This document shows, piece after piece, positions 1 through 43,093 of a DNA stretch of 64,000 nucleotides. The notes beneath the pieces are model-generated. The model was not told where the DNA came from. It made no database searches and saw nothing but the letters and a program-made list of their open reading frames with translations. This DNA is from Piromyces finnis finn. Lineage: Eukaryota; Fungi; Neocallimastigomycota. Each line of letters opens with the position of its first letter. Position 1 is the stretch's first letter. The stretch lies in assembly GCA_002104945.1 (NCBI GenBank), contig MCFH01000043.1, forward strand, positions 186,001 to 250,000, in the 5' to 3' direction. A program made the translations under genes and the position numbers.

Positions 1-3000
1 CCAATTAAAGGTGTTGAAGAAGTTGTTTTAGAACCAAAGGATGAAATAATTGAAGAACTACCAGTTGAAGAACAAAAACCAGTTGTTGAAGTTGTTGAAG
101 AAGTTGTTACTGAACCAAAGGAAGAAATAATTGAAGAAAAACAAGTTGAAGAACAAAAACCAGTTGAAGAAGCTGTTGAAGAAGTTGTTTCAGAACCAAA
201 GGAAGAAATAATTGAAGAGCAATCAGTTGAAGGACAACAACCAGTTGAAGAAGTTGCTTCAGAACCAAAGGAAGAAATTATTGAAGAAAATGTTAGAGAA
301 GAAATTATTGAAGTTCCTTCCGAAGAATCAGGAAAGAAAAGATTTATTAAGGGAATTATTAGATACATTACTAGAAAGAATCCAGTTACTGGAGAAGAAA
401 TTGTAGAAGAAATTGTTAATGAAGAATCAATCGAAGAACAACCAGTTGAAGTTGTTGAAGATGTTGATTCAGAACCAAGAGAAGAATCAACTGAAGAACA
501 ACCAGTTGAAGAAGTTGTTGAAGAAGTAATTTCAGAACCAAAGGAAGAAATAATTGAAGAACAACCAGTTGAAAAACAAGAAAAGAAGCCAATATTATAT
601 AGGGTATTTAAAAAGAGTAACAGACGTAGAAGAAAGTCAAAGAATCCAATTGAAGAAGGTGTTAAAGAAGTTGGTTCAGAACCAAAGGAAGAATCAACTG
701 AAGAACAACCAGTTGAAGAAGTTGTTGAAGAAGTTATTTCAGAAACAAATGATGAAAGAATTGAAGAACAACCAATTAAAGGTGTTGAAGAAGTTGTTTT
801 AGAACCAAAGAATGAAATAATTGAAGAACTACCAGTTGAAGAACAAAAACCAGTTGTTGAAGTTGTTGAAGAAGTTGTTACTGAACCAAAGGAAGAAATA
901 ATTGAAGAACAACCAATTGAAGAACAGCAACCAGTTGAAGAACAGCAACCAGTTGAAGAAGTTGTTACTGAACCAAAGGAAGAAATAATTGAACAACAAG
1001 TTGAAGAACAAAAACCAGTTGTTGAAATTGTTGAAGAAGTTGTTTCAGAACAAAATGATGAAATAACTGAAAAACAACCAGTTGAAGAAGTTGTTGAAGA
1101 AATTATTTCAGAACCAAAGGAAGAAATTATTGAAGAAAATGTTAGAGAAGAAATTATTGAAGTTCCTTACGAAGAATCAGGAAAGAAAAGATTTATTAAG
1201 AGAATTATTAGATACATTACTAGAAAGAACCCAATTACTGGAGAAGAAATTGTAGAAGAAATAGTTAATGAAGAATCAACCGAAGAACAACCAGTTGAAG
1301 TTGTTGAAGAAGTTGATTCTGAACCAAGAGACGAATCAACTGAAGAACAACCAGTTGAAGAAGTTGTTGAAGAAGTTGTTACTGAACCAAAGGAAGAAAT
1401 AATTGAAGAACAACCAGTTGAAAAACAACCAATAGTAGAAGTTGTTGAAGAAGTTGTTTCAGAACCAAAGGAAGAAATAATTGAAGAGCAATCAGTTGAA
1501 GAACAGCAACCAGTTGAAGAAGTTGTTACTGAACCAAAGGAAGAAATAATTGAAGAACAACCAGTTGAAGAACAAAAACCAGTTGAAGAAGCTGTTGAAG
1601 AAGTTGTTTCAGAACCAAAGGAAGAAATAATTGAAGAGCAATCAGTTGAAGGACAACAACCAGTTGAAGAAGTTGCTTCAGAACCAAAGGAAGAAATTAT
1701 TGAAGAAAATGTTAGAGAAGAAATTATTGAAGTTCCTTACGAAGAATCAGGAAAGAAAAGATTTATTAAGAGAATTATTAGATACATTACTAGAAAGAAT
1801 CCAGTTACTGGAGAAGAAATTGTAGAAGAAATTGTTAATGAAGAATCAACCGAAGAACAACCAGTTGAAGTTGTTGAAGAAGTTGATTCTGAACCAAGAG
1901 ACGAATCAACTGAAGAACAACCAGTTGAAGAAGTTGTTGAAGAAGTTGTTACTGAACCAAAGGAAGAAATAATTGAAGAACAACCAGTTGAAGAAGCTGT
2001 TGAAGATGTTGTTTCAGAACCAAAGGAAGAAATAATTGAAGAAAATGTTAAAGAAGAAATTATTGAAGTTCCTTCCGAAGAATTAGGAAAGAAAAGATTT
2101 ATTAAGAGAATTATTAGATACATTACTAGAAAGAATCCAGTTACTGGAGAAGAAATTGTAGAAGAAATTGTTAATGAAGAATCAATCGAAGAACAACCAG
2201 TTGAAGTTGTTGAAGATGTTGATTCAGAACCAAGAGAAGAATCAACTGAAGAACAACCAGTTGAAGAAGTTGTTGAAGAAGTAATTTCAGAACCAAAGGA
2301 AGAAATAATTGAAGAACAACCAGTTGAAAAACAAGAAAAGAAGCCAATATTATATAGGGTATTTAAAAAGAGTAACAGACGTAGAAGAAAGTCAAAGAAT
2401 CCAATTGAAGAAGGTGTTAAAGAAGTTGGTTCAGAACCAAAGGAAGAATCAACTGAAGAACAACCAGTTGAAGAAGTTGTTGAAGAAGTTATTTCAGAAA
2501 CAAATGATGAAAGAATTGAAGAACAACCAATTAAAGGTGTTGAAGAAGTTGTTTTAGAACCAAAGAATGAAATAATTGAAGAACTACCAGTTGAAGAACA
2601 AAAACCAGTTGTTGAAGTTGTTGAAGAAGTTGTTACTGAACCAAAGGAAGAAATAATTGAAGAACAACCAATTGAAGAACAGCAACCAGTTGAAGAACAG
2701 CAACCAGTTGAAGAAGTTGTTACTGAACCAAAGGAAGAAATAATTGAACAACAAGTTGAAGAACAAAAACCAGTTGTTGAAATTGTTGAAGAAGTTGTTT
2801 CAGAACAAAATGATGAAATAACTGAAAAACAACCAGTTGAAGAAGTTGTTGAAGAAATTATTTCAGAACCAAAGGAAGAAATTATTGAAGAAAATGTTAG
2901 AGAAGAAATTATTGAAGTTCCTTACGAAGAATCAGGAAAGAAAAGATTTATTAAGAGAATTATTAGATACATTACTAGAAAGAATCCAGTTACTGGAGAA

Positions 3001-4560
3001 GAAATTGTAGAAGAAATTGTTAATGAAGAATCAACCGAAGAACAACCAGTTGAAGTTGTTGAAGAAGTTGATTCTGAACCAAGAGACGAATCAACTGAAG
3101 AACAACCAGTTGAAGAAGTTGTTGAAGAAGTTGTTACTGAACCAAAGGAAGAAATAATTGAAGAACAACCAGTTGAAGAAGCTGTTGAAGATGTTGTTTC
3201 AGAACCAAAGGAAGAAATAATTGAAGAAAATGTTAAAGAAGAAATTATTGAAGTTCCTTCCGAAGAATTAGGAAAGAAAAGATTTATTAAGAGAATTATT
3301 AGATACATTACTAGAAAGAATCCAGTTACTGGAGAAGAAATTGTAGAAGAAATTGTTAATGAAGAATCAACCGAAGAACAACCAGTTGAAGAAGTTGAAG
3401 ATGTTGATTCGGAACCAAGAGAAGAATCAACTGAAGAACAACCAGTTGAAGAAGTTGTTGAAGAAGTAATTTCAGAACCAAAGGAAGAAATAATTGAAGA
3501 ACAACCAGTTGAAAAACAAGAAAAGAAGCCAATATTATATAGGGTATTTAAAAAGAGTAACAGACGTAGAAGAAAGTCAAAGAATCCAATTGAAGAAGGT
3601 GTTGAAGAAGTTGGTTCAGAACCAAAGAAAGAATCAACTGAGGAACAACCAGTTGAAGAAGTTGTTGAAGAAGTTATTTCAGAAACAAATGATGAAAGAA
3701 TTGAAGAACAACCAATTAAATGTGTTGAAGAAGTTGTTTTAGAACCAAAGAATGAAATAATTGAAGAACTACCAGTTGAAGAACAAAAACCAGTTGTTGA
3801 AGTTGTTGAAGAAGTTGTTACTGAACCAAAGGAAGAAATAATTGAAGAAAAACAAGTTGAAGAACAAAAACCAGTTGTTGAAGTTGTTGAAGAAGTTGTT
3901 ACTGAACCAAAGGAAGAAATAATTGAAGAAAAACAAGTTGAAGAACAAAAACCAGTTGTTGAAGTTGTTGAAGAAGTTGTTACTGAACCAAAGGAAGAAA
4001 TAATTGAACAACAAGTTGAAGAACAAAAACCAGTTGTTGAAATTGTTGAAGAAGTTGGTTCAGAACAAAATGATGAAATAACTGAAAAACAACCAGTTGA
4101 AGAAGTTGTTGAAGAAGTTATTTCAGAACCAAAGGAAGAAATTATTGAAGAAAATGTTAGAGAAGAAATTATTGAAGTTCCTTCCGAAGAATCAGGAAAG
4201 AAAAGATTTATTAAGAGAATTATTAGATACATTACTAGAAAGAATCCAGTTACTGGAGAAGAAATTGTAGAAGAAATTGTTAATGAAGAATCAACCGAAG
4301 AACAACCAGTTGTTGAAGTTGTTGAAGAATTTATTTCAGAACCAAAAGAAGAAATAATTGAAAAACAACCAGTTGAAGAACAAAAACCAGTTGTTGAAGT
4401 TGTTGAAGAAGTTGTTACTGAACCAAAGGAAGAAATAATTGATGAACAACCAGTTGAAGAACAACCAATAGTAGAAGTTATTAATGAAGTAAATGATGAA
4501 ATAACTGAAGAACAACCAGTTGTTGAAGAAGTTGAAGAAGTTGTTTCAGAACCAAAGGAA
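1..4560 (+). repeat. Coding tandem repeat array, subfamily A (EEQPVEEVVEEVVSEPKEEIIE) with higher-order units
   Basis: Identical blocks recur at offsets of 1755 bp (554/2309, 829/2584), 1419 bp (212/1631) and 1185 bp (2309/3494). It holds 7 copies of KKRFIK[RG]IIRYITRKNP[VI]TG and 3 copies of KKPILYRVFKKSNRRRRKSKNP. Confidence 0.9.
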
Positions 4561-7500
4561 GAAGTGGTTGAAGAAAAACAACCAACTGAAGAAGTTATTT
4601 CTGAACTCAAGGAAGAAATAATTGAAGATAAACAAGCTGAAAAACAAGAAAAGAAGCCAGTATTATATAGAGTATTTAAAAAGAATAACAGACGTAGAAG
4701 AAAAACAAAGAATACAAATGAAGAAATTGTTGAAGTTACTTCTGAACCAAGAGAAGAAATTATTGAAAAACCAGAAACTGAAGTTAGTAAAGAAGTTGTT
4801 TCAGAACCAAAGGAAGAATCAACTGAAGAACAACCTATTGTTGAAGAATTTATAACTGAAGTAAAAGAAGAAATAATTGAAGAAGAACAACCAGTTGAAA
4901 AACAAGAAAAGAAACAAATATTATATAGAGTATTTAAGAAGAGTAATAGACGTAGAAGAAAGTCAAAGAATCCAAGTGAAGAAGCTCTTTCAGAACCAAA
5001 GGAAGGATCTACTGAAGAACAACCTGTTGTTGAAGTTGTTGAAGAAATTACTTCAGAACCAAAAGAAGAGATTGTTGAAGAACAACCAGTTGAAGAAGTT
5101 GCTGAAGAAAATATTATTGAAGATGTCAATATAAAAGAAAATGATAAAATTATTTCTTATAATCAAAATGAAGATTCAATTATTGATGGATTATTAAATA
5201 AAGTAAACAAATGTAATGGAAATGAATATTTTGAGTTAATTCCATCTGTAATTGAAATGATAATAAATGAAGTAAGATTTGATAATAATAGTTCTGAAAA
5301 AGAAAAACAAAATATATTAAATAGATTATTAAAACAATTTAATATTTGTGAAAATGTTGAACAACCAGCTGAAGAAGCAATTTCAAAGAAAGAAATAGTT
5401 GAAGAAGTTGCTAAAGAACAAGCGGCTGAAGAAGTAATATCTTCTGAATTAAAAGAAGAGATAATTGAACAACCAGTTACTGAAGTTGTTGAAGAAAAAC
5501 CAATTGAAAAATCAATTGAACAACCAGTAGAAGAAGTTTCTTCTGAACCAAAGGAAGAAGTTATTGAACAACAACCAATAACTGAAGTTGTTGAAGAGGT
5601 TGTAGAAGTTGTTGAAGAGAAACCAATTGAACAACCAATTGAACAAAAAGTAGAAGAAGTTTCTTCTGCACCAAAGGAAGAAATTATTGAACAACAACCA
5701 ATAACTGAAGTTGTTGAAGAATTTGTAGAAGTTGATGAAGAACAACCAAATAAACAACCAGTAGAAGAAGTTTCTTCTGAACCAAAGGAAGAAGTTATTG
5801 AACAACAACCAATAACTGAAGTTGTTGAAGAAGTTGAAGAAGTTGTTGAAGAACAACCAATTGAACAACCAATTGAACAACCAGTAGAAGATTCTTCTGA
5901 ACCAAAGGAAGAAATTATTGAACAACCAATAACTGAAGTTGTTGAAGAAGTTGAAGAAGTTGTTGAAGAAAAACCAATTGAACAACCAATTGAACAACCA
6001 GTAGAAGTTTCTTCTGAACCAAAGGAAGAAATTATTGAACAACAACCAATAACTGAAGTTGTTGAAGAAGTTGAAGAAGTTGTTGAAGAAGTTGTTGAAG
6101 AACAACCAAATAAACAACCAGTAGAAGAAGTTTCTTCTGAACCAAAGGAAGAAGTTATTGAACAACAAATTATAGAAGTAATTTCTGATGAAATATTAAA
6201 TAAAGAAAATGAAACAAAAGAAAATGAATATATTGGATTAATACCATCTGTAATAGAAATGATAATTAATGAAGTAAAATTTAATAATAGCAATTTCGAA
6301 AATGAAAATCAAAATATTTTAAGTAAATTATTAAAGAAATTTAATATTTATGAAAATATTGAACAACAACCAATAACTGAAGTTGTTGAAGAAGTTGAAG
6401 AAGTTGTTGAAGAACAACCAATTGAACAACCAGTAGAAGTTTCTTCTGAACCAAAGGAAGAAATTATTGAACAACAACCAATAAATGAAGTTGTTGAAGA
6501 AGTTGAAGAAGTTGTTGAAGAACAACCAATTGAACAACCAGTAGAAGAAGTTTCTTCTGAACAAAAGGAAGAAATTATTGAACAACCAATAACTGAAGTT
6601 GTTGAAGAAGTTGAAGAAGTTGTTGAAGAAAAACCAATTGAACAACCAATTGAACAACCAGTAGAAGTTTCTTCTGAACCAAAGGAAGAAATTATTGAAC
6701 AACAACCAATAACTGAAGTTATTGAAGAAGTTGTTAAAGAAGTTGTTGAAGAACAACCAATTGAACAACCAGTAGAAGTTTCTTCTGAACCAAAGGAAGA
6801 AATTATTGAACAACAACCAATAACTGAAGTTGTTGAAGAAGTTGTAGAAGTTGTTGAAGAACCTAAAGAAGTTGTTGAAACTGAAATAAGAGAAGAAATT
6901 ATTGAAATTCCTTCTACAGAACCAGTAAAGAAAAGATATATTAAGAAAATTATTAGATACATAACTAGAAAGAATCCAATTACTGGAGAAGAAGTTGTTG
7001 AAGAAGTTGTTGAAGAACAATCAATTGAACAACCATTAGAAGAAGTTTCCTCTGAACCAAAGGAAGAAATTATTGAACAACAACCAATAACTGAAGTTGT
7101 TGAAGAAGTTGAAGAAGTTTTTGAAGAACAACCAATTGAACAACTAATTGAACAACCAGTAGAAGAAGTTTCTTCTGAACCAAAGGAAGAAATTATTGAA
7201 CAACCAATAACTGAAGTTGTTGAAGAAGTTGAAGTTGTTGAAGAAGTTGTTGAAAAACAACCAATTGAACAACCAGTAGAAGTTTCTTCTGAACCAAAGG
7301 AAGAAGTTATTGAACAACAACCAATAACTGAAGTTGTTGAAGAAGTTGAAGAAGTTGTTGAAGAAAAACCAATTGAACAACCAATTGAACAACCAGTAGA
7401 AGTTTCTTCTGAACCAAAGGAAGAAATTATTGAACAACAACCAATAACTGAAGTTGTTGAAGAAGTTGAAGAAGTTTTTGAAGAACAACCAATTAAACAA

Positions 7501-13500: not shown

Positions 13501-16500
13501 AAGGAAGAAATTATTGAACAACAACCAATAACTGAAGTTGTTGAAGAAGTTGTTGAAGAACAACCAATTGAACAACCAGTGGAAGTTTCTTCTGAACCGA
13601 AGGAAGAAATTATTGAACAACAACCAATAACTGAAGTTATTGAAGAAGTTGAAGAAGTTGTTGAAGAACAACCAATTGAACAACCAATTGAACAACCAGT
13701 AGAAGTTTCTTCTGAACCAAAGGAAGAAATTATTGAACAACCAATAACTGAAGTTGTTGAAGAAGTTGAAGAAGTTGTTGAAGAACAACCAATTGAACAA
13801 CCAATTGAACAATTAGTAGAAGTTTCTTCTGAACCAAAAGAAGAAATTATTGAACAAAAACCAATAACTGAAGTTGTTGAAGAAGTTGTAGAAGTTGTTG
13901 AAGAACCTAAAGAAGTTGTTGAAACTGAAATAAGAGAAGAAATTATTAAAATTCCTTCTACAGAACCAGTAAAGAAAAGATATATTAAGAAAATTATTAG
14001 ATACATAACTAGAAAGAATCCAATTACTGGAGAAGAAGTTGTTGAAGAAGTTGTTGAAGAACAACCAATTGAACAACCATTAGAAGAAGTTTCCTCTGAA
14101 CCAAAGGAAGAAATTATTGAACAACAACCAATAACTGAAGTTGTTGAAGAAGTTGAAGAAGTTGTTGAAGAACAACCAATTGAACAACCAATTGAACAAC
14201 CAGTAGAAGAAGTTTCTTCTGAACCAAAGGAAGAAATTATTGAACAACCAATAACTGAAGTTGTTGAAGAAGTTGAAGAAGTTGTTGAAGAACAACCAAT
14301 TGAACAACCAATTGAACAATTAGTAGAAGTTTCTTCTGAACCAAAAGAAGAAATTATTGAACAAAAACCAATAACTGAAGTTGTTGAAGAAGTTGTAGAA
14401 GTTGTTGAAGAACCTAAAGAAGTTGTTGAAACTGAAATAAGAGAAGAAATTATTGAAATTCCTTCTACAGAACCAGTAAAGAAAAGATATATTAAGAAAA
14501 TTATTAGATACATAACTAGAAAGAATCCAATTACTGGAGAAGAAGTTGTTGAAGAAATTGTTGAAGAACAACCAATTGAACAACCAGTAGAAGTTTCTTC
14601 TGAACCAAGGGAAGAAATTATTGAACAAAAACCAATAACTGAAGTTGTTGAAGAAGTTGAAGAAGTTGTTGAAGAAAAACCAATTGAACAACCAATTGAA
14701 CAATTAGTAGAAGTTTCTTCTGAACCAAAGGAAGAAATTATTGAACAAAAACCAATAACTGAAGTTGTTGAAGAAGTTGAAGAAGTTGTTGAAGAACAAC
14801 CAATTGAACAACCAATTGAACAACCAGTAGAAGAAGTTTCTTCTGAACCAAAGGAAGAAATTATTGAACAAAAACCAATAACTGAAGTTGTTGAAGAAGT
14901 TGTTGAAGAACAACCAATTGAACAACCAGTGGAAGTTTCTTCTGAACCAAAGGAAGAAATTATTGAACAACCAATAACTGAAGTTATTGAAGAAGTTGTA
15001 GAAGTTGTTGAAAAACCTAAAGAAGTTGTTGAAACTGAAATAAGAGAAGAAATTATTGAAATTCCTTCTACAGAACCAGTAAAGAAAAGATATATTAAGA
15101 AAATAATTAGATACATAACTAGAAAGAATCCAATTACTGGAGAAGAAGTTGTTGAAGAAGTTGTTGAAGAACAACCAATTGAACAACCATTAGAAGAAGT
15201 TTCTTCTGAAACAAAGGAAGAAATTATTGAACAACCAATAACTGAAGTTGTTGAAGAAGTTGAAGTTGTTGAAGAAGTTGTTGAAAAACAACCAATTGAA
15301 CAACCATTAGAAGAAGTTTCCTCTGAACCAAAGGAAGAAGTTATTGAACAACAACCAATAACTGAAGTTGTTGAAGAAGTTGAAGAAGTTGTTGAAGAAC
15401 AACCAATTAAACAACCAATTGAACAACCAGTGGAAGTTTCTTCTGAACCGAAGGAAGAAATTATTGAACAATCAATAACTGAAGTTGTTGAAGAAGTTGT
15501 AGAAGTTGTTGAAGAACCTAAAGAAGTTGTTGAAACTGAAATAAGAGAAGAAATTATTGAAATTCCTTCTACAGAACCAGTAAAGAAAAGATATATTAAG
15601 AAAATTATTAGATACATAACTAGAAAGAATCCAATTACTGGAGAAGAAGTTGTTGAAGAAATTGTTGAAGAACAACCAATTGAACAACCAGTAGAAGTTT
15701 CTTCTGAACCAAGGGAAGAAATTATTGAACAACAACCAATAACTGAAGTTGTTGAAGAAGTTGAAGAAGTTGTTGAAGAAAAACCAATTGAACAACCAAT
15801 TGAACAATTAGTAGAAGTTTCTTCTGAACCAAAGGAAGAAATTATTGAACAACCAATAACTGAAGTTGTTGAAGAAGTTGAAGAAGTTGTTGAAGAAAAA
15901 CCAATTGAACAACCAATTGAACAACCAGTAGAAGTTTCTTCTGAACCAAAGGAAGAAATTATTGAACAACCAATAACTGAAGTTGTTGAAGAAGTTGTAG
16001 AAGTTGTTGAAGAACCTAAAGAAGTTGTTGAAACTGAAATAAGAGAAGAAATTATTGAAATTCCTTCTAAAGAACCAGTAAAGAAAAGATATATTAAGAA
16101 AATTATTAGATACATAACTAGAAAGAATCCAATTACTGGAGAAGAAGTTGTTGAAGAAGTTGTTGAAGAACAATCAATTGAACAACCATTAGAAGAAGTT
16201 TCCTCTGAACCAAAGGAAGAAGTTATTGAACAACAACCAATAACTGAAGTTGTTGAAGAAGTTGAAGAAGTTGTTGAAGAAAAACCAATTGAACAACCAA
16301 TTGAACAACCAGTAGAAGAAGTTTCTTCTGAACCAAGGGAAGAAATTATTGAACAACCAATAACTGAAGTTGTTGAAGAAGTTGTAGAAGTTGTTGAAGA
16401 ACCTAAAGAAGTTGTTGAAACTGAAATAAGAGAAGAAATTATTGAAATTCCTTCTACAGAACCAGTAAAGAAAAGATATATTAAGAAAATTATTAGATAC

Positions 16501-19500
16501 ATAACTAGAAAGAATCCAATTACTGGAGAAGAAGTTGTTGAAGAAATTGTTGAAGAACAATCAATTGAACAACCAGTAGAAGTTTCTTCTGAACCAAAGG
16601 AAGAAATTATTGAACAACAACCAATAACTGAAGTTGTTGAAGAAGTTGTTGAAGAACAACCAATTGAACAACCAGTGGAAGTTTCTTCTGAACCGAAGGA
16701 AGAAATTATTGAACAACAAACAATAACTGAAGTTATTGAAGAAGTTGAAGAAGTTGTTGAAGAACAACCAATTGAAAAACCAATTGAACAACCAGTAGAA
16801 GTTTCTTCTGAACCAAAGGAAGAAATTATTGAACAACCAATAACTGAAGTTGTTGAAGAAGTTGAAGAAGTTGTTGAAGAACAACCAATTGAACAACCAA
16901 TTGAACAATTAGTAGAAGTTTCTTCTGAACCAAAAGAAGAAATTATTGAACAAAAACCAATAACTGAAGTTGTTGAAGAAGTTGTAGAAGTTGTTGAAGA
17001 ACCTAAAGAAGTTGTTGAAACTGAAATAAGAGAAGAAATTATTGAAATTCCTTCTACAGAACCAGTAAAGAAAAGATATATTAAGAAAATTATTAGATAC
17101 ATAACTAGAAAGAATCCAATTACTGGAGAAGAAGTTGTTGAAGAAGTTGTTGAAGAACAACCAATTGAACAACCATTAGAAGAAGTTTCCTCTGAACCAA
17201 AGGAAGAAATTATTGAACAACAACCAATAACTGAAGTTGTTGAAGAAGTTGAAGAAGTTGTTGAAGAACAACCAATTGAACAACCAATTGAACAACCAGT
17301 AGAAGAAGTTTCTTCTGAACCAAAGGAAGAAATTATTGAACAACCAATAACTGAAGTTGTTGAAGAAGTTGAAGAAGTTGTTGAAGAACAACCAATTGAA
17401 CAACCAATTGAACAATTAGTAGAAGTTTCTTCTGAACCAAAAGAAGAAATTATTGAACAAAAACCAATAACTGAAGTTGTTGAAGAAGTTGTAGAAGTTG
17501 TTGAAGAACCTAAAGAAGTTGTTGAAACTGAAATAAGAGAAGAAATTATTGAAATTCCTTCTACAGAACCAGTAAAGAAAAGATATATTAAGAAAATTAT
17601 TAGATACATAACTAGAAAGAATCCAATTACTGGAGAAGAAGTTGTTGAAGAAGTTGTTGAAGAACAACCAATTGAACAACCATTAGAAGAAGTTTCTTCT
17701 GAACCAAAGGAAGAAGTTATTGAACAACAACCAATAACTGAAGTTGTTGAAGAAGTTGAAGAAGTTGTTGAAGAAAAACCAATTGAACAACCAATTGAAC
17801 AACCAGTAGAAGAAGTTTCTTCTGAACCAAGGGAAGAAATTATTGAACAACCAATAACTGAAGTTGTTGAAGAAGTTGAAGAAGTTGTTGAAGAACAACC
17901 AATTGAACAACCAATTGAACAATTAGTAGAAGTTTCTTCTGAACCAAAAGAAGAAATTATTGAACAAAAACCAATAACTGAAGTTGTTGAAGAAGTTGTA
18001 GAAGTTGTTGAAGAACCTAAAGAAGTTGTTGAAACTGAAATAAGAGAAGAAATTATTGAAATTCCTTCTACAGAACCAGTAAAGAAAAGATATATTAAGA
18101 AAATTATTAGATACATAACTAGAAAGAATCCAATTACTGGAGAAGAAGTTGTTGAAGAAATTGTTGAAGAACAACCAATTGAACAACCAGTAGAAGTTTC
18201 TTCTGAAACAAAGGAAGAAATTATTGAACAACCAATAACTGAAGTTGTTGAAGAAGTTGAAGAAGTTGTTGAAGAAAAACCAATTGAACAACCAATTGAA
18301 CAACCAGTAGAAGTTTCTTCTGAAACAAAGGAAGAAATTATTGAACAACCAATAACTGAAGTTGTTGAAGAAGTTGAAGAAGTTGTTGAAGAAAAACCAA
18401 TTGAACAACCAATTGAACAACCAGTAGAAGTTTCTTCTGAACCAAAGGAAGAAATTATTGAACAACCAATAACTGAAGTTGTTGAAGAAGTTGTTAAAGA
18501 AACTAAAGAAGTTGTTGAAACTGAAATAATAGAAGAAATTATTGAAATTCCTTCTACTGAGCCATTAAAGAAAAGATATATTAAAAGAATAATAAAATGT
18601 ATTAAAAGAAATAATCCAAACAATGGAAAAGAAGAAGTTGTTAATGAAATTATATCAGAAGAACCAACACCAGAAGAGAAAGAAATAATTGTAGAAGTTC
18701 CTTCTGATGAAAAAGATAAAAAGAAATTTGTAAAAAGAATAATAAGAATTATAAAAAGAAAGAATGAAGACTCTAATATGGAGGAAATTGTAGAAGATAT
18801 AATATCTGAAGAACCAGTGAAAGAAGAAAGAGAAATAACCGTTGAAATTCCTACAGGTAAAAAGGGTAAAACAAAATTTGTTAAGAGAGTAGTTAAATAT
18901 ATTACAAGAAAGAATCCATTTAATGGAAAGGAAGAAGTTATTGAAGAAATTGTTTCAGAAGAGCCTGTTGAAGATTCTAGCAAAAAATCAATATTTAAAA
19001 TAATAACTGATAAAATAAAGAATGTTTTAAATAATAATAATGAAGAAGAAATAATTTGTATGCCAAGAGATGAAAATATTGAAAATACTGAAAAGGAAGA
19101 AACAGAAGAAGAGATAGAAGATGGTGATATTAATGATAGTAAGGTTTTATACAGAGTTTATAGTAAAAACAGAAGAAACAAGATTAGAAATAGAAAAAGA
19201 AATAAATCATTTGAAACATCTTCAAAAACAGCGAATATTCCAAATGAATTTACTGAAAATAAGGAAGATCAAAGCGAAACTTATGTTAATAAAAAAATTG
19301 ATGAATGTAATAGTAGAATATTGAATAATTCAATTATAGAAGAAGCTACTGATGAGCAATTAATGATGTCAGAAACAATAATAGATGATGATTTAATTAA
19401 CGAGGTGCCATTAGAAAATAAAAATAAGCTTATTGATCATAATAACAATGAAATAATAATATTATCGCAATCAACAAGTGGAAAAAAGAGAAGAAATAGT

Positions 19501-20676
19501 AAAAAGTCAAAATCGAAGAAAAGTTCAAATAAGAAAAAAATATTAACAAAAAATAATGAGTTAAGTGAAGAATATAATTCAGACAATATTAAAGATAGTG
19601 GTAATGGTACAGATTTAAGTGAAGTAAAAAATAAAAATATTAGTAGTGAAATTCAAACTGATAAGCTTATTGAATATGATAAATTCAGTTTTATTAAATA
19701 TATTATTAGTCTAATATTTTATTTAATTGGTCTTTTTAATATATTTCAAAAATCCCAAAAAAATAATAAAATAAATAATACCACAGAAGATGTGAAAAGT
19801 AAAGAAATTAAAATAAATGAAAAGTCAAATTTTAAATTAACTAAAGATGAAAAGCCAAATTTTCGGTTAAGAAAAACAAATAATCTATCACGACAGTCAA
19901 AGAAAAATGAAAATGATGACGTTAATGTTATGAAAATTACCAATAATAAAGATATTAATTTAACTGATAAAGAAAAAATAAATATTGTCGAAGATAAAAT
20001 CAACAATAAGAGTTTTAATGATAAAAAAACAATACTTAGAATATTACTTTTGCCATTTTTAATATATATTATTGGAAAAAGTCTTATGTTATTACCAGAT
20101 AAATCTGATATAATTGAATTAGTATTTGATCAATTTAATATATCCGAGGAACAAATTCCAATTTTCTTATTATTTGTGAACGGTATATTCGTATTATTAT
20201 TAAAATGCATGATTGAATCAATTAATTATATTAAATCACAATTTAGATCTTTAGAAAAAGATAATACGTACATTGATCGTGCGTATAATTTAAGTAGAAT
20301 ATTAATAACTAATCTTGTTTTATATGCAATTGCAGTATTTGGAACTTCTGTTAATTCAAATACGAACGTGTCTTTAATATCTCAACTCTCTGTATTATAT
20401 ACTATTCTTACTATTCCTTATACTATCTTAGTTATGTTAGATAATCATCATTATTTACCTTTACCTCAAGGCGTATTATTATTTATTTTTATTTCTGGAT
20501 GTGTTCCTATAAGATTAATAAATCGTGGTGAATTGTATGAAAAAATAATAACTTTACCAGATACTATTAGTGAATGCTTTTCTTCAATATATCTAAGTCC
20601 AAGTGAGTTATATAATAAATTAGTAACATTACCTTCAAGGATACATGAAATAAGACAAAATACAATTCACTATTAA
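1..20676 (+). CDS. Giant Glu/Val/Pro/Ile-rich repeat protein with a C-terminal multi-pass membrane domain; 5'-incomplete, at least 6,891 aa in the window
   Basis: Frame +1 reads cca att aaa ggt gtt gaa gaa... from base 1 and I saw no stop up to TAA at 20674-20676. The ORF track starts at 4564 only because that GTG is the first in-frame start codon. No intron signals are needed. The last ~330 aa contain 5-6 hydrophobic segments. Confidence 0.9.
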   Translation, partial: PIKGVEEVVLEPKDEIIEELPVEEQKPVVEVVEEVVTEPKEEIIEEKQVEEQKPVEEAVEEVVSEPKEEIIEEQSVEGQQPVEEVASEPKEEIIEENVREEIIEVPSEESGKKRFIKGIIRYITRKNPVTGEEIVEEIVNEESIEEQPVEVVEDVDSEPREESTEEQPVEEVVEEVISEPKEEIIEEQPVEKQEKKPILYRVFKKSNRRRRKSKNPIEEGVKEVGSEPKEESTEEQPVEEVVEEVISETNDERIEEQPIKGVEEVVLEPKNEIIEELPVEEQKPVVEVVEEVVTEPKEEIIEEQPIEEQQPVEEQQPVEEVVTEPKEEIIEQQVEEQKPVVEIVEEVVSEQNDEITEKQPVEEVVEEIISEPKEEIIEENVREEIIEVPYEESGKKRFIKRIIRYITRKNPITGEEIVEEIVNEESTEEQPVEVVEEVDSEPRDESTEEQPVEEVVEEVVTEPKEEIIEEQPVEKQPIVEVVEEVVSEPKEEIIEEQSVEEQQPVEEVVTEPKEEIIEEQPVEEQKPVEEAVEEVVSEPKEEIIEEQSVEGQQPVEEVASEPKEEIIEENVREEIIEVPYEESGKKRFIKRIIRYITRKNPVTGEEIVEEIVNEESTEEQPVEVVEEVDSEPRDESTEEQPVEEVVEEVVTEPKEEIIEEQPVEEAVEDVVSEPKEEIIEENVKEEIIEVPSEELGKKRFIKRIIRYITRKNPVTGEEIVEEIVNEESIEEQPVEVVEDVDSEPREESTEEQPVEEVVEEVISEPKEEIIEEQPVEKQEKKPILYRVFKKSNRRRRKSKNPIEEGVKEVGSEPKEESTEEQPVEEVVEEVISETNDERIEEQPIKGVEEVVLEPKNEIIEELPVEEQKPVVEVVEEVVTEPKEEIIEEQPIEEQQPVEEQQPVEEVVTEPKEEIIEQQVEEQKPVVEIVEEVVSEQNDEITEKQPVEEVVEEIISEPKEEIIEENVREEIIEVPYEESGKKRFIKRIIRYITRKNPVTGEEIVEEIVNEESTEEQPVEVVEEVDSEPRDESTEEQPVEEVVEEVVTEPKEEIIEEQPVEEAVEDVVSEPKEEIIEENVKEEIIEVPSEELGKKRFIKRIIRYITRKNPVTGEEIVEEIVNEESTEEQPVEEVEDVDSEPREESTEEQPVEEVVEEVISEPKEEIIEEQPVEKQEKKPILYRVFKKSNRRRRKSKNPIEEGVEEVGSEPKKESTEEQPVEEVVEEVISETNDERIEEQPIKCVEEVVLEPKNEIIEELPVEEQKPVVEVVEEVVTEPKEEIIEEKQVEEQKPVVEVVEEVVTEPKEEIIEEKQVEEQKPVVEVVEEVVTEPKEEIIEQQVEEQKPVVEIVEEVGSEQNDEITEKQPVEEVVEEVISEPKEEIIEENVREEIIEVPSEESGKKRFIKRIIRYITRKNPVTGEEIVEEIVNEESTEEQPVVEVVEEFISEPKEEIIEKQPVEEQKPVVEVVEEVVTEPKEEIIDEQPVEEQPIVEVINEVNDEITEEQPVVEEVEEVVSEPKEEVVEEKQPTEEVISELKEEIIEDKQAEKQEKKPVLYRVFKKNNRRRRKTKNTNEEIVEVTSEPREEIIEKPETEVSKEVVSEPKEESTEEQPIVEEFITEVKEEIIEEEQPVEKQEKKQILYRVFKKSNRRRRKSKNPSEEALSEPKEGSTEEQPVVEVVEEITSEPKEEIVEEQPVEEVAEENIIEDVNIKENDKIISYNQNEDSIIDGLLNKVNKCNGNEYFELIPSVIEMIINEVRFDNNSSEKEKQNILNRLLKQFNICENVEQPAEEAISKKEIVEEVAKEQAAEEVISSELKEEIIEQPVTEVVEEKPIEKSIEQPVEEVSSEPKEEVIEQQPITEVVEEVVEVVEEKPIEQPIEQKVEEVSSAPKEEIIEQQPITEVVEEFVEVDEEQPNKQPVEEVSSEPKEEVIEQQPITEVVEEVEEVVEEQPIEQPIEQPVEDSSEPKEEIIEQPITEVVEEVEEVVEEKPIEQPIEQPVEVSSEPKEEIIEQQPITEVVEEVEEVVEEVVEEQPNKQPVEEVSSEPKEEVIEQQIIEVISDEILNKENETKENEYIGLIPSVIEMIINEVKFNNSNFENENQNILSKLLKKFNIYENIEQQPITEVVEEVEEVVEEQPIEQPVEVSSEPKEEIIEQQPINEVVEEVEEVVEEQPIEQPVEEVSSEQKEEIIEQPITEVVEEVEEVVEEKPIEQPIEQPVEVSSEPKEEIIEQQPITEVIEEVVKEVVEEQPIEQPVEVSSEPKEEIIEQQPITEVVEEVVEVVEEPKEVVETEIREEIIEIPSTEPVKKRYIKKIIRYITRKNPITGEEVVEEVVEEQSIEQPLEEVSSEPKEEIIEQQPITEVVEEVEEVFEEQPIEQLIEQPVEEVSSEPKEEIIEQPITEVVEEVEVVEEVVEKQPIEQPVEVSSEPKEEVIEQQPITEVVEEVEEVVEEKPIEQPIEQPVEVSSEPKEEIIEQQPITEVVEEVEEVFEEQPIKQPIEQPVEVSSEPKEEIIEQSITEVVEEVVEVVEEPKEVVETEIREEIIEIPSTEPVKKRYIKKIIRYITRKNPITGEEVVEEIVEEQPIEQPVEVSSEPREEIIEQQPITEVVEEVEEVVEEKPIEQPIEQPVEDSSEPKEEIIEQPITEVVEEVEEVVEEKPIEQPIEQPVEVSSEPKEEIIEQPITEVVEEVVEVVEEPKEVVETEIREEIIEIPSTEPVKKRYIKKIIRYITRKNPITGEEVVEEIVEEQSIEQPVEVSSEPKEEIIEQQPITEVVEEVVEEQPIEQPVEVSSEPKEEIIEQQTITEVIEEVEEVVEEQPIEQPIEQPVEVSSEPKEEIIEQPITEVVEEVEEVVEEQPIEQPIEQLVEVSSEPKEEIIEQKPITEVVEEVVEVVEEPKEVVETEIREEIIEIPSTEPVKKRYIKKIIRYITRKNPITGEEVVEEIVEEQPIEQPLEEVSSEPKEEIIEQKPITEVVEEVVEEQPIEQPVEVSSEPKEEIIEQPITEVIEEVVEVVEKPKEVVETEIREEIIEIPSTEPVKKRYIKKIIRYITRKNPITGEEVVEEVVEEQPIEQPLEEVSSETKEEIIEQQPITEVVEEVEEVVEEQPIEQPIEQLVEVSSEPKEEIIEQQPITEVVEEVEEVVEEKPIEQPIEQLVEVSSEPKEEIIEQKPITEVVEEVEEVVEEQPIEQPVEVSSEPKEEIIEQKPITEVVEEVVEEQPIEQPVEVSSEPKEEIIEQPITEVIEEVVEVVEEQPIEQPIEQPVEVSSEPKEEIIEQPITEVVEEVEEVVEEQPIEQPIEQLVEVSSEPKEEIIEQKPITEVVEEVVEVVEEPKEVVETEIREEIIEIPSTEPVKKRYIKKIIRYITRKNPITGEEVVEEVVEEQPIEQPLEEVSSETKEEIIEQQPITEVVEEVEEVVEEQPIEQPIEQLVEVSSEPKEEIIEQQPITEVVEEVEEVVEEKPIEQPIEQLVEVSSEPKEEIIEQKPITEVVEEVEEVVEEQPIEQPVEVSSEPKEEIIEQKPITEVVEEVVEEQPIEQPVEVSSEPKEEIIEQPITEVIEEVVEVVEKPKEVVETEIREEIIEIPSTEPVKKRYIKKIIRYITRKNPITGEEVVEEVVEEQPIEQPLEEVSSETKEEIIEQQPITEVVEEVEEVVEEQPIEQPIEQLVEVSSEPKEEIIEQQPITEVVEEVEEVVEEKPIEQPIEQLVEVSSEPKEEIIEQKPITEVVEEVEEVVEEQPIEQPVEVSSEPKEEIIEQKPITEVVEEVVEEQPIEQPVEVSSEPKEEIIEQPITEVIEEVVEVVEKPKEVVETEIREEIIEIPSTEPVKKRYIKKIIRYITRKNPITGEEVVEEVVEEQPIEQPLEEVSSETKEEIIEQPITEVVEEVEEVVEEVVEEQPIEQPVEVSSEPKEEIIEQQPITEVVEEVEEVVEEKPIEQPIEQLVEVSSEPKEEIIEQKPITEVVEEVEEVVEEQPIEQPIEQPVEEVSSEPKEEIIEQQPITEVVEEVEEVVEEQPIEQPIEQPVEVSSEPKEEIIEQQPITEVVEEVVEEQPIEQPVEVSSEPKEEIIEQQPITEVIEEVEEVVEEQSIEQPIEQPVEVSSEPKEEIIEQQPITEVVEEVVEEQPIEQPVEVSSEPKEEIIEQQPITEVIEEVEEVVEEQSIEQPIEQPVEVSSEPKEEIIEQQPITEVVEEVVEEQPIEQPVEVSSEPKEEIIEQQPITEVIEEVEEVVEEQPIEQPIEQPVEVSSEPKEEIIEQPITEVVEEVEEVVEEQPIEQPIEQLVEVSSEPKEEIIEQKPITEVVEEVVEVVEEPKEVVETEIREEIIEIPSTEPVKKRYIKKIIRYITRKNPITGEEVVEEVVEEQPIEQPLEEVSSEPKEEIIEQPITEVVEEVEEVVEEVVEEQPIEQPIEQPVEVSFEPKEEIIEQKPITEVVEEVVEEQPIEQPVEVSSEPKEEIIEQQPITEVIEEVEEVVEEQSIEQPIEQPVEVSSEPKEEIIEQQPITEVVEEVVEEQPIEQPVEVSSEPKEEIIEQQPITEVIEEVEEVVEEQPIEQPIEQPVEVSSEPKEEIIEQPITEVVEEVEEVVEEQPIEQPIEQLVEVSSEPKEEIIEQKPITEVVEEVVEVVEEPKEVVETEIREEIIKIPSTEPVKKRYIKKIIRYITRKNPITGEEVVEEVVEEQPIEQPLEEVSSEPKEEIIEQQPITEVVEEVEEVVEEQPIEQPIEQPVEEVSSEPKEEIIEQPITEVVEEVEEVVEEQPIEQPIEQLVEVSSEPKEEIIEQKPITEVVEEVVEVVEEPKEVVETEIREEIIEIPSTEPVKKRYIKKIIRYITRKNPITGEEVVEEIVEEQPIEQPVEVSSEPREEIIEQKPITEVVEEVEEVVEEKPIEQPIEQLVEVSSEPKEEIIEQKPITEVVEEVEEVVEEQPIEQPIEQPVEEVSSEPKEEIIEQKPITEVVEEVVEEQPIEQPVEVSSEPKEEIIEQPITEVIEEVVEVVEKPKEVVETEIREEIIEIPSTEPVKKRYIKKIIRYITRKNPITGEEVVEEVVEEQPIEQPLEEVSSETKEEIIEQPITEVVEEVEVVEEVVEKQPIEQPLEEVSSEPKEEVIEQQPITEVVEEVEEVVEEQPIKQPIEQPVEVSSEPKEEIIEQSITEVVEEVVEVVEEPKEVVETEIREEIIEIPSTEPVKKRYIKKIIRYITRKNPITGEEVVEEIVEEQPIEQPVEVSSEPREEIIEQQPITEVVEEVEEVVEEKPIEQPIEQLVEVSSEPKEEIIEQPITEVVEEVEEVVEEKPIEQPIEQPVEVSSEPKEEIIEQPITEVVEEVVEVVEEPKEVVETEIREEIIEIPSKEPVKKRYIKKIIRYITRKNPITGEEVVEEVVEEQSIEQPLEEVSSEPKEEVIEQQPITEVVEEVEEVVEEKPIEQPIEQPVEEVSSEPREEIIEQPITEVVEEVVEVVEEPKEVVETEIREEIIEIPSTEPVKKRYIKKIIRYITRKNPITGEEVVEEIVEEQSIEQPVEVSSEPKEEIIEQQPITEVVEEVVEEQPIEQPVEVSSEPKEEIIEQQTITEVIEEVEEVVEEQPIEKPIEQPVEVSSEPKEEIIEQPITEVVEEVEEVVEEQPIEQPIEQLVEVSSEPKEEIIEQKPITEVVEEVVEVVEEPKEVVETEIREEIIEIPSTEPVKKRYIKKIIRYITRKNPITGEEVVEEVVEEQPIEQPLEEVSSEPKEEIIEQQPITEVVEEVEEVVEEQPIEQPIEQPVEEVSSEPKEEIIEQPITEVVEEVEEVVEEQPIEQPIEQLVEVSSEPKEEIIEQKPITEVVEEVVEVVEEPKEVVETEIREEIIEIPSTEPVKKRYIKKIIRYITRKNPITGEEVVEEVVEEQPIEQPLEEVSSEPKEEVIEQQPITEVVEEVEEVVEEKPIEQPIEQPVEEVSSEPREEIIEQPITEVVEEVEEVVEEQPIEQPIEQLVEVSSEPKEEIIEQKPITEVVEEVVEVVEEPKEVVETEIREEIIEIPSTEPVKKRYIKKIIRYITRKNPITGEEVVEEIVEEQPIEQPVEVSSETKEEIIEQPITEVVEEVEEVVEEKPIEQPIEQPVEVSSETKEEIIEQPITEVVEEVEEVVEEKPIEQPIEQPVEVSSEPKEEIIEQPITEVVEEVVKETKEVVETEIIEEIIEIPSTEPLKKRYIKRIIKCIKRNNPNNGKEEVVNEIISEEPTPEEKEIIVEVPSDEKDKKKFVKRIIRIIKRKNEDSNMEEIVEDIISEEPVKEEREITVEIPTGKKGKTKFVKRVVKYITRKNPFNGKEEVIEEIVSEEPVEDSSKKSIFKIITDKIKNVLNNNNEEEIICMPRDENIENTEKEETEEEIEDGDINDSKVLYRVYSKNRRNKIRNRKRNKSFETSSKTANIPNEFTENKEDQSETYVNKKIDECNSRILNNSIIEEATDEQLMMSETIIDDDLINEVPLENKNKLIDHNNNEIIILSQSTSGKKRRNSKKSKSKKSSNKKKILTKNNELSEEYNSDNIKDSGNGTDLSEVKNKNISSEIQTDKLIEYDKFSFIKYIISLIFYLIGLFNIFQKSQKNNKINNTTEDVKSKEIKINEKSNFKLTKDEKPNFRLRKTNNLSRQSKKNENDDVNVMKITNNKDINLTDKEKINIVEDKINNKSFNDKKTILRILLLPFLIYIIGKSLMLLPDKSDIIELVFDQFNISEEQIPIFLLFVNGIFVLLLKCMIESINYIKSQFRSLEKDNTYIDRAYNLSRILITNLVLYAIAVFGTSVNSNTNVSLISQLSVLYTILTIPYTILVMLDNHHYLPLPQGVLLFIFISGCVPIRLINRGELYEKIITLPDTISECFSSIYLSPSELYNKLVTLPSRIHEIRQNTIHY
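6361..18540 (+). repeat. Coding tandem repeat array, subfamily B (EQPIEQPVEVSSEPKEEIIEQQPITEVVEEVEEVVE, about 33-40 aa monomer)
   Basis: Roughly a hundred near-identical monomers with 18 interspersed EIPSTEPVKKRYIKKIIRYITRKNPITGEE modules. Near-exact higher-order duplications of 219 bp (x3; ccg marker at 12208/12427/12646), 507 bp, 711 bp and 951 bp. Confidence 0.92.
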
Positions 20677-42500: not shown

Positions 42501-43093
42501 ATAAAGGTTTTAATAACAAAGATTTTGTTTTTGAACGAAATTCATTTATTAGTCTGTATGCCCATACAAGAGATATGAAGATTTCTACCCTTTCAGGTAT
42601 TTGTGCTGCGCAGCAAATGAAATGCTTTGTTAAATGGAGAAAATCAAATTGTATAATTAAAGATCTCGTCCGATCTATTCCTCCCATGTCTCATTACTCT
42701 TGGGCCAAAGAATCTTGTTCACTACATAAGAAGCTTATGAAAATAAATATTAAAAGTACTAAAGATATTAGAGAACATTATTGGAATAATAGTAGCCTAA
42801 ATAATGGAAGTAAAGCCCTCAGATATACTAACAACAAATTCCTTAATTCAAATCGCCTAATGCATATCGGTCTTAACAAACCTCACTTAAATTTAGGAAT
42901 TACCTGGATTATTCGTATTCGATGCGGTTATGAAAATATTACCCGAATTGTTATTGCCAGTAATAGAGTTACTCCTGACTGCCTTCGTGTCTGTCCATGT
43001 TGCGGATATGACGAACAATCTTTTTATCATTGGATATTAGAATGTTCTGCATTCTCTGAATACAGAGCTTCTTCACTAATGAAAACATTATGA
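39530..43093 (+). mobile_element. Decayed non-LTR (LINE-like) retrotransposon, copy 2: N-terminal domain, APE, RT, CCHC knuckle
   Basis: APE motifs CWNINGWN, CLQEVG, LVGDFN, CIDHII and SDHKP. RT motifs KAPGPDGIP, NYRGISL, PEQFGF, FIDLIKAYDSV and GVRQGCPLSP. C-terminal CPCCG..QSFYHWILEC. Disrupted near 39820 and by a frameshifting deletion at about 42045. Confidence 0.95.

Follow-up and report, generated by a model that had tools for sequence, protein, structure and literature searches.

The closest described counterparts of the gene reported here are the giant fungal proteins leashin and Lah, Woronin-body tethers of Pezizomycotina whose N-terminal heads are related to the WSC-binding domain of LAH. 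Neurospora leashin is 10,821 aa long with a net charge of -1,088, and it combines a 344-aa cargo-binding head with acidic P/E/L/S repeats and a conserved C-terminus; its predicted single ORF proved to be two transcription units (PMC2690989). Targeting of A. fumigatus Lah requires the C-terminal membrane-spanning segment, and Lah proteins carry one such segment followed by a conserved extracellular domain of ~219 aa (PMC5345055).

The window analysed here, a stretch of 64,000 nucleotides from the genome of the anaerobic gut fungus Piromyces finnis, opens inside a gene whose predicted product resembles these proteins in several respects. It is giant (8,836 aa against 5,900-10,800 aa) and acidic (net charge -1,845 against -1,088), with a conserved head of ~340 aa, a poorly conserved, Pro/Glu-rich acidic centre (E 29%, P 8.6%) and a conserved membrane-spanning C-terminal region, and, like theirs, its ORF ranks with the largest of its genome. 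On the other hand, a search with the anchor profile showed no sequence relationship and matched only Neocallimastigomycota among 1.84 billion proteins. Six helices and a 51-aa tail stand here in place of the one segment and large extracellular C-domain of Lah, the repeats are of the E/V/I/P/Q rather than the P/E/L/S type, and 45 predicted folded basic modules are present, which leashin lacks. To our knowledge, Woronin bodies are restricted to Pezizomycotina and absent from the gut-fungus lineage.

With the PEVK region of titin, the protein shares Glu-rich stretches expected to be disordered and elastic, the megadalton scale and perhaps tandem repeats of P/E/V/K type of ~27-28 residues, but it is far more acidic, poorer in Lys, membrane-anchored, fungal and not homologous. 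Titin PEVK has P/E/V/K repeats of 26-28 residues and poly-E motifs; here, E, V, P and K are abundant in an 81-bp (27-aa) repeat that is titin-like in composition and length only. An hmmscan against Pfam-A (E <=1) found no Ig, Fn3 or kinase domains in three stretches that together make up 4,836 of the 8,836 residues, namely the N-terminal 3,945 and the C-terminal 891 on either side of the middle repeat array (window 6001-18000). An initial interpretation made from the letters alone (the sequence-only reading) had drawn a parallel with titin PEVK, Pf332 and leashin; membership of the titin or Pf332 group is not supported, the titin domains being missing from the residues scanned. Nesprins, giant cytoplasmic rods whose C-terminal membrane anchor links a membrane to other structures, are similar in plan, but the same 4,836 residues gave no Pfam KASH, spectrin or CH match, and the anchor has six helices, whereas KASH domains consist of one TM helix and a short luminal peptide.

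The gene is delimited by an open frame in two parts:

1..20676, + strand: in-window part of the ORF, codons 1946-8836 plus the stop, with no stop in frame 1
L004:4166-10000 = C171:180166-186000, + strand: upstream part of the ORF, the first 1,945 codons, from upstream extension to the ATG

Direct translation of frame 1 over window positions 1-20676 gives 6,891 codons whose lone stop is the terminal one, while the remaining + frames hold 409 and 1,278 stops; the stretch contains no N runs. The sequence-only reading had described an uninterrupted frame of at least 20.7 kb running past the left edge, and the contig bears this out: the frame stays open for a further 5,868 bases upstream. The upstream ATG that it proposed to look for, the first in this extension, lies at L004:4166 (contig position C171:180166), 5,834 bases upstream of the window, and a signal peptide, sought at the same time, is absent from the 8,836-aa protein. 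The gene spans 26.5 kb (C171:180166-206676), so the earlier size of at least 6,891 aa holds as a lower bound but falls short of the full ORF of 8,836 aa. An open frame of 8,847 aa was found independently in a genome-contig search. The ORF listing begins the frame at 4564 because the GTG there is the first start-like codon in frame. Median GC is 31% in the ORF, compared with 13.6% ahead of the ATG and 18.8% past the stop; it drops sharply at both ends, and no intergenic-like AT-rich trough was found inside the ORF, where the lowest GC is 18%. The predicted protein has a mass of ~1.02 MDa, a pI of 4.1 and 2,724 acidic side chains; the in-window translation contains E 30%, V 15%, I 12.7%, P 8.6%, K 7% and Q 6.4%.

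From the N-terminus, the conserved head is followed by 11 back-to-back modules, the acidic array, a conserved tail and six hydrophobic helices. The array, of ~7,100 residues, consists of acidic E/V/P/I/Q spacers with 34 modules, seven polybasic-aromatic motifs and two islands:

1..5120, + strand: region A, 21-, 23- and 27-aa E/V/P/I/Q acidic repeats (TRF, translation)
5480..18500, + strand: region B, ~40-aa (120-bp) acidic repeat in about 100 copies (TRF, self-BLAST)
595..615, + strand: polybasic-aromatic motif, L-Y-R-V-F-K-K and then an R/K run (regex on translation)
5128..5445, + strand: non-repeat island mini-domain with the core I-P-S-V-I-E-M-I-I-N-E at 5239-5271

Every TRF period and 954 of the 956 self-BLAST offsets are multiples of 3 and so keep the reading frame; copies of the in-frame blocks are 83-97% identical. 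No exact repeat is longer than 892 bp, and 37% of the 30-mers are distinct. In region A (TRF periods of 63, 69, 81, 150 and 336 bp) type-A basic modules and polybasic motifs stand between the repeats. Region B shows a TRF row at 6520-18493 with period 120 and 98.8 copies, higher-order periods of 219, 363 and 387 bp, and 18 type-B modules. The polybasic-aromatic motif starts at 595, 2350, 3535, 4663, 4921 and 19147 in the window and occurs once upstream. A second copy of the island has its core at 6241-6273 (+), and homologous islands are found in Piromyces sp. E2 pieces (three) and in metagenome contig L022 (one). The dominance of E/V/P/I/Q repeats noted beforehand is correct as to composition, but the array goes beyond mere low complexity, since it carries discrete modules of ~55 aa.

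These modules were counted with an HMM built from copies (score >20 bits), which gave 45: 28 in the window (the first at 271-441, the last at 18829-18975) and 17 upstream. Among these copies are:

9064..9234, + strand: example of a ~57-aa basic module (HMM, AF2)
18505..18975, + strand: three divergent terminal modules, each orthologous to the module at the same position in Piromyces sp. E2

The consensus begins with an acidic strand ending in E-[IV]-P, a loop and the strand K/R-[FY]-I-K-[KR]-I-I-[RK]-Y-I-T-[RK], and continues with an N-P-x-T-G turn and the strand E-E-[IV]-V-E-E. An AF2 model from a 37-sequence alignment (pLDDT 77.6) places strands at 9-21 (acidic), 29-42 (basic) and 49-62 (acidic), and the module is predicted to be a three-stranded antiparallel beta-meander in which a K/R/I-rich central strand is clamped by two E/I/V-rich strands. 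The profile of the 37 sequences reached a best E of 0.24 against PDB sequences, with unrelated proteins, and the module has no match in Pfam, G5 included. ESM Atlas gave no usable match for the module region, and Foldseek and VIA-align returned no significant match for the model (E >=0.013, Z <=4.4). The Pfam near-misses PT-TG, 2C_adapt and Anthrone_oxy are attributed to chance, as they score below the gathering thresholds and coincide with the N-P-x-T-G turn or with a hydrophobic helix. The unit also occurs on contigs C158 and C68 of the P. finnis genome and in proteins P0011-P0018. This "charge-clamp" module appears to be a previously undescribed and uncatalogued family of Neocallimastigomycota.

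The head is 54% identical over ~340 aa to the metagenome protein P0011, which is also Met-initiated; this value comes from a global alignment, BLASTP having given module matches alone. The head has no match among Pfam and PDB sequences, and PDB sequence searches with the head, the tail and the anchor profile found nothing at E <0.2. The C-terminal features are:

18982..19683, + strand: conserved non-repeat tail, with invariant alignment columns and a dN/dS of 0.46
19684..19746, + strand: hydrophobic helix 1, Kyte-Doolittle peak 2.02, conserved in orthologues
19747..20031, + strand: K/N-rich basic linker containing N-F-[KR]-L repeats, whose number differs between species
20032..20520, + strand: hydrophobic helices 2-6, Kyte-Doolittle peaks 1.7-2.3
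20521..20676, + strand: C-terminal tail of 51 aa, ending I-R-Q-N-T-I-H-Y, and the stop

The conserved tail contains the blocks K-K-S-I-F-K-I-I-T-D, the polybasic motif, S-E-T-Y-V-N and D-D-D-S-I-N-E, and its copy of the polybasic motif is kept in Piromyces sp. E2, in the gut-metagenome contigs L009, L021 and L022, and in the paralogue described below. The K/N-rich linker has the lowest GC of the ORF (18-20%). Helices 2-6 lie at 20032-20094, 20155-20214, 20299-20352, 20374-20439 and 20470-20520, with an invariant loop H-H-Y-L-P-L-P-Q-G at 20446-20472; they are 79% and 56% identical to the orthologues and present in a single copy in the genome. The stop position is kept in all orthologues. About six C-terminal hydrophobic helices had been noticed from the letters, and at a Kyte-Doolittle threshold of >=1.6 the last 330 residues hold exactly six segments, while the rest of the protein has none. 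The six form a conserved polytopic domain. AF2 on helices 2-6 (three sequences) gave an all-helical secondary structure with a pLDDT of 42, too low for a fold, and ESM Atlas gave no usable match for the anchor. The most basic loop is the 95 aa after helix 1, so a cytoplasmic N-terminus fits poorly under the positive-inside rule and the topology is ambiguous.

Regarding orthologues, PIROE2DRAFT_64428 of Piromyces sp. E2 is 60% identical over the last 451 aa. Its frame passes upstream beyond the annotated Met, through the same modules, up to an assembly gap, and the two Piromyces sp. E2 pieces that lie between gaps keep one frame open across modules and islands. Proteins of Neocallimastix 'constans' and N. 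lanati show the same tail and anchor, as do contigs L009, L021 and L022, and these three contigs also carry modules upstream. The anchor profile had six matches among 1.84 billion protein representatives, all from Neocallimastigomycota or gut metagenomes, in keeping with the lineage specificity suspected at the outset, and the six-helix anchor seems to be an uncatalogued family restricted to Neocallimastigomycota. Against Piromyces sp. E2, dN/dS is 0.18 for helices 2-6, 0.34 for the module/repeat region and 0.46-0.52 for the linkers; conservation is lower in the repeat region than at the ends of the protein. Near the anchor, L009 has an in-frame TAG 664 codons ahead of the stop, L021 has an in-frame stop, and L022 has a frameshift in the linker between helices 1 and 2; these disruptions in short contigs may be errors, introns or real. 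A within-gene test on codon-position mismatches (synonymous versus non-synonymous between copies) gave no signal of selection, but nothing can be read from this, as the copies undergo concerted evolution and their sub-repeats are misaligned by blastn. A gap-length statistic was rejected as evidence of selection, being an alignment artefact.

The view that the frame is maintained as a coding gene is strengthened by these orthologues, by the dN/dS of 0.18-0.52 and by the conservation of head, modules, tail motifs and C-terminus. The neighbouring retroelements are indeed decayed, as had been observed, with the adjoining LINE-like elements split across frames. Judged from its sequence, the locus is one intron-less P. 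finnis gene, coding and under purifying selection.

A true sequence relative of the giant gene is found on contig C158 of P. finnis. This paralogue of ~4,500 aa (fragment BCR36DRAFT_95591) shares the ~55-aa module, the acidic spacers and the polybasic motif (here F-R-V-F-G-K-K), and has a regular period of 126 aa, but it has a different head and a CaaX end in place of the six-helix domain. It ends in C-I-I-M, a prenylation signal, and C-[IV]-I-M ends are conserved in the module family. This suggests that the theme of the family is module arrays held on the cytoplasmic face of a membrane. In the assembly, the paralogue is broken by several frame changes.

Taken as a whole, the best explanation, to which a probability of about 50% is given, is a single giant selected gene encoding a cytoplasmic elastic tether or spacer with a C-terminal membrane anchor, similar in design to leashin and Lah. 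The bulk of the protein would be cytoplasmic, the C-terminal helices would fix it in a membrane, and the head would bind a partner, which could be an organelle, a second membrane or the cytoskeleton. Through self-repulsion, the acidic spacers could form an entropic spring, interrupted by the small, stiff beta-sheet modules, whose contour length would be on the order of 2 micrometres. The protein would then act as a long elastic tether or spacer, a functional counterpart of leashin/Lah and of titin PEVK that evolved independently in Neocallimastigomycota. The tether, spring or scaffold function and the extensibility are proposed by analogy with leashin/Lah and titin PEVK.

A membrane-bound polyanionic brush or cation buffer, in place of a two-ended tether, is an unlikely competitor. 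The acidic side chains would then sequester Ca2+, Mg2+ or polyamines, as high-capacity acidic Ca2+ buffers such as calsequestrin do, or repel neighbouring membranes or organelles electrostatically and sterically, and the head would have no cargo-binding role. The extreme net charge and Glu content fit this, and the CaaX paralogue likewise puts an acidic module array on a membrane. Nevertheless, the conservation of the head suggests a specific function at the far end, and the modules and polybasic motifs are conserved (dN/dS about 0.34) beyond the need of a charge carrier.

Somewhat less probable still is that the long frame comprises two or more transcription units, for example a six-helix membrane protein of ~540 aa from an internal start and a separate soluble acidic repeat protein upstream. 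Leashin provides the precedent (PMC2690989), the database models of P. finnis and Piromyces sp. E2 begin at the same internal Met, and the in-frame stop of L009 lies upstream of the anchor. However, the Neocallimastix-like orthologue does not conserve this Met, P. finnis, Piromyces sp. E2, L021 and L022 have a continuous frame over the junction, and the modules run unbroken to within 10 residues of the conserved tail, with no AT-rich dip of intergenic type in the interior.

An extracellular or cell-surface fibril, like the bacterial SasG and Aap rods, is very improbable. SasG and Aap have a single-layer three-stranded beta-sheet fold, which the module, predicted as a flat sheet of three long strands, may share, and in both cases repeats alternate with segments disordered on their own. 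Their G5-E modules lead the Foldseek list for the module model, but non-significantly (E 0.013-0.06, TM 0.23-0.43), and their VIA Z of 3.5-4.0 is no better than that of unrelated sheets. The basic loop after helix 1 would suit an N-out topology, yet the protein lacks a signal peptide, its first 8,500 residues lack a hydrophobic segment, and the CaaX box of the paralogue is a cytoplasmic modification. SasG and Aap are also secreted, wall-anchored and bacterial, whereas this eukaryotic protein is probably cytoplasmic and has no Pfam G5 match.

That the locus is a non-functional expanded coding satellite or an assembly artefact, its frame open by chance or recent amplification, is hardly credible: concerted evolution towards near-identical copies, the silent within-gene test and an antisense frame that is also open (4,211-4,269 codons) would suit it, but the orthologous architecture in at least three other lineages under constraint, the many stops in the other sense frames, the differences between copies and the conserved start, stop and unique domains speak against it.

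The antisense frame is as follows:

6348..18983, - strand: antisense open frame of 4,211 aa, an artefact of the codon set of the sense strand

It was rejected as a gene and regarded as a compositional artefact that follows from the purine-rich codons of the sense strand, among which TTA, CTA and TCA are nearly absent. Frame -2 carries 25 stops.

Returning to the elastic tether, a more specific version is tentative and rather doubtful, namely that gut fungi independently invented a leashin-like, micrometre-scale tether that positions organelles, built from charge-clamp modules on polyanionic springs with six-helix or prenyl membrane anchoring. The organelles positioned could be, for example, hydrogenosomes or nuclei, and under load, spare acidic strands of the spacers might pair with the basic strand by strand swapping, a built-in mechanism that would allow reversible extension. 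The protein would be a second, independent fungal case of the design of head, acidic repeat spring and membrane anchor, and convergent giant organelle tethers would become testable in a lineage whose cell biology is nearly unexplored, touching on hydrogenosome and nuclear positioning and on zoospore architecture.

If made as one chain, this ~1-MDa protein is probably the largest of P. finnis. It would bring two uncatalogued sequence families found only in Neocallimastigomycota, the ~55-aa module, present in at least two other proteins of the genome, and the six-helix anchor. A literature search found no described giant protein in Neocallimastigomycota, and a word search with the tail region found no matching gene model of 3,790-12,059 aa in a 5.8-billion-protein database. 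The only model of the gene in that database is a C-terminal one of 538 aa; giant single-exon repeat genes are truncated or missed by gut-fungus annotations.

Translation of window positions 1-20676 in frame 1 gave 6,891 codons with a single stop at the end, and the remaining two sense frames contain 409 and 1,278 stops. The ORF listing starts this giant ORF at 4564, because the GTG located there is the first start-like codon in frame. When 40 kb of the contig was walked back in frame, the frame stayed open for a further 5,868 bases upstream of the window, and its first ATG was found in the upstream locus at L004:4166 (contig position 180166). The full ORF is 8,836 codons long, uninterrupted and free of N, so the long frame running off the left edge, as described in the sequence-only reading, was borne out and enlarged. 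An independent genome search reported an open frame of 8,847 aa at this locus, for which the protein database holds only a 538-aa model, none of giant length being found. The computed product is 1,023 kDa with a pI of 4.1, and its 2,724 acidic versus 879 basic residues give a net charge of -1,845. Its organization is as follows.

Features of the giant protein (residues)
1 to ~340: unique conserved head, no hydrophobic segment
~355 to 1,030: eleven modules (basic units of ~55 aa) back to back, period 52-67 aa
~1,040 to 3,650: Region A, 13 type-A modules among acidic repeats of 21-27 aa
~1,040 to 3,650, in Region A: six polybasic-aromatic motifs, each L-Y-R-V-F-K-K followed by a run of R/K
3,655-3,760 and ~4,000-4,090: a non-repeat 'island', present twice
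~3,800 to 8,140: Region B, a 40-aa acidic repeat in ~100 copies
~3,800 to 8,140, in Region B: 18 type-B modules spaced 120-510 aa
8,140 to 8,275: three divergent modules
8,275 to 8,505: conserved tail, which contains the seventh polybasic motif
8,507 to 8,785: all hydrophobic segments of the protein, six in number (Kyte-Doolittle 1.7-2.3)
Last 51 residues: C-terminal tail

An ATG or a signal peptide had been anticipated upstream; the ATG is present, and the head lacks a hydrophobic segment, hence a signal peptide. At the other end, the six Kyte-Doolittle segments, with none elsewhere, give computational support to the proposed membrane anchorage by about six C-terminal helices. The most basic loop of this anchor is the one after helix 1. 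The AF2 model of the anchor, built from three sequences, was unusable at a pLDDT of 42. The module HMM recognized 45 copies in the protein, 28 within the window. Pfam-A gave nothing above gathering scores in the first 3,945 and last 891 residues (window 6001-18000 excluded).

The following data bear on whether the ORF is a gene or an open satellite. GC content in the ORF has a median of 31% and a minimum of 18%, compared with 13.6% in the 3 kb 5' of the ATG and 18.8% 3' of the stop, and the compositional steps fall at the gene boundaries. All TRF periods in the array are multiples of three, and 954/956 internal BLAST offsets are 0 mod 3. Comparison between copies is uninformative on selection because the array evolves in concert, and the orthologue sequences are decisive for a gene rather than a satellite. 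A simple assembly duplication is unlikely, since the copies are not identical (repeat blocks 83-97% identical, longest exact repeat 892 bp, 37% distinct 30-mers).

Concerning the orthologues, the last 451 aa match PIROE2DRAFT_64428 of Piromyces sp. E2 with 60% identity and full coverage, and one metagenome protein with 40% identity. In the E2 contig the frame runs 5' of the annotated Met through the same modules up to an assembly gap, and two pieces between further gaps, of 704 and 478 codons, each have just a single open frame; both encode repeats, modules and the island domain of the giant gene. Searching 1.84 billion representatives with a helix 2-6 profile retrieved six proteins, all with E <=1e-57: the P. 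finnis protein itself, Neocallimastix 'constans' KAL6617123.1, N. lanati KAG4105389.1 and gut-metagenome proteins. This search found no anchor relatives outside gut fungi, in agreement with the proposed lineage specificity. A metagenome scan added two orthologous contigs: L022, which encodes the island and modules, the tail, helix 1 with the linker, and helices 2-6, and L021, where a single module precedes the same tail and anchor. Furthermore, the metagenome protein P0011 begins with a Met, shares 54% identity at its N-terminus with the head (residues 1-345), and runs on into modules.

A Nei-Gojobori comparison of P. finnis with E2 (dS about 0.6) gave a dN/dS of 0.18 over helices 2-6; the stretch of modules and repeats had 0.34 and the linkers 0.46-0.52. 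Every orthologue keeps both the stop codon and the motif I-R-Q-N-x-I-H-x at the terminus. Together, the orthologues, dN/dS and conserved terminus support a maintained protein-coding gene, with a probability of roughly 0.9. The N. lanati protein KAG4105389.1, a 332-aa model, has a divergent anchor (H-Y-C-L-P-L-T-Q-G versus H-H-Y-L-P-L-P-Q-G) preceded by K/N/S-rich repeats.

Three metagenome orthologues are disrupted: L009 (nt 1-66) by an in-frame TAG within a module, 664 codons before the stop; L021 (~nt 1150) by an in-frame stop near the anchor; and L022:2169-2256 by a frameshift in the helix 1-helix 2 linker. On such short contigs these may reflect error, an intron or real truncation. L022 ends in 19 A's about 470 nt past the stop, possibly a poly(A) tail, although the AT-rich genome weakens this inference. 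L021 carries A15 close to its end, and both contigs may be transcript-derived given these runs.

To model the module, 37 distinct copies were aligned, drawn from the giant gene, its orthologues in E2 and metagenomes, and two further P. finnis genes. AF2 predicted three antiparallel strands of 13-14 residues each (pLDDT 77.6), in the order E/I/V strand ending E-[IV]-P, K/R/I/Y strand, N-P-x-T-G turn and second E/V strand; the module is thus modelled as two acidic strands clamping a basic one. At the head of the Foldseek list stood the single-layer G5-E sheets of SasG and Aap (E 0.013-0.06, TM 0.23-0.43), and an independent fold search peaked at Z 4.4, with G5 domains at 3.5-4.0 amid many unrelated sheets. 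Given these scores, such a fold class is plausible and kinship is unsupported; sequence searches of the PDB with the module returned no match.

The module recurs at two further places in the P. finnis genome, on contigs C158 and C68. The C158 gene (C158:154575-168294, minus strand) spans about 4,500 codons, has a regular period of 126 aa and ends in C-I-I-M plus stop. Frame changes or TGA codons divide it into six open pieces, and its sole annotation is the 854-aa fragment BCR36DRAFT_95591. A terminal C-[IV]-I-M, which is a conserved CaaX prenylation signal, is shared by the orthologues of this gene, P0012, P0013 (N. lanati) and P0014. Prenylation is a cytoplasmic modification. Two branches of the family therefore end in membrane anchors of different kinds, which supports cytoplasmic, membrane-attached module arrays. 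The C68 locus is organized as follows.

C68:392027-396311 (L018:4027-8311), plus strand: GT8 glycogenin-like ORF (Pfam Glyco_transf_8, E 2.8e-19) and module ORF

The module-bearing stretch (C68:393570-396311) lies directly downstream of the GT8 ORF in another frame, with 914 codons, K/E/P/S repeats and 2-4 module copies; the two may form one spliced gene.

As for function, the 'extensible tether' of the sequence-only reading is a reasoned analogy, and a tether or spring has about even odds. The approximately 5,400 residues outside head, modules and tail, at 0.36-0.38 nm each, would give a contour length of about 2 micrometres; their charge would keep the chain expanded, the modules would contribute short stiff elements, and the polybasic-aromatic motifs could fold back, either onto acidic lipids or onto the protein's own chain. 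Among described systems, leashin/Lah comes closest. Neurospora leashin, with a predicted length of 10,821 aa and charge of -1,088, has a 344-aa Woronin body-binding head, conserved ends and acidic P/E/L/S repeats that its authors compared to titin PEVK, and its single predicted ORF is in fact two transcription units (PMC2690989); the P. finnis locus could likewise be divided. In A. fumigatus Lah, a C-terminal membrane-spanning segment is required for septal-pore targeting (PMC5345055). The likeness is one of design only, since the P. finnis anchor has six helices and lacks relatives beyond gut fungi in the profile search, and the repeats and modules differ. A giant acidic membrane-anchored tether would be of a known kind, the P. 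finnis version being built from two uncatalogued sequence families.

Regarding the neighbouring genes, two LINE-like elements (window 23607-25975 and 39844-43093, plus strand) carry an endonuclease/exonuclease/phosphatase domain, alone or together with reverse transcriptase; the ORFs are divided between reading frames, consistent with the decay previously noticed. A 217-aa ORF (62000-62653, minus strand) matches the N-terminal domain of Crinkler effectors below threshold (E 3e-4, 21.9 bits versus a cut-off of 24.6). Moreover, an intact ORC2 homologue (44194-45897, minus strand; RecA-like_ORC2 E 1e-88 plus a WHD domain) served as codon-usage reference.
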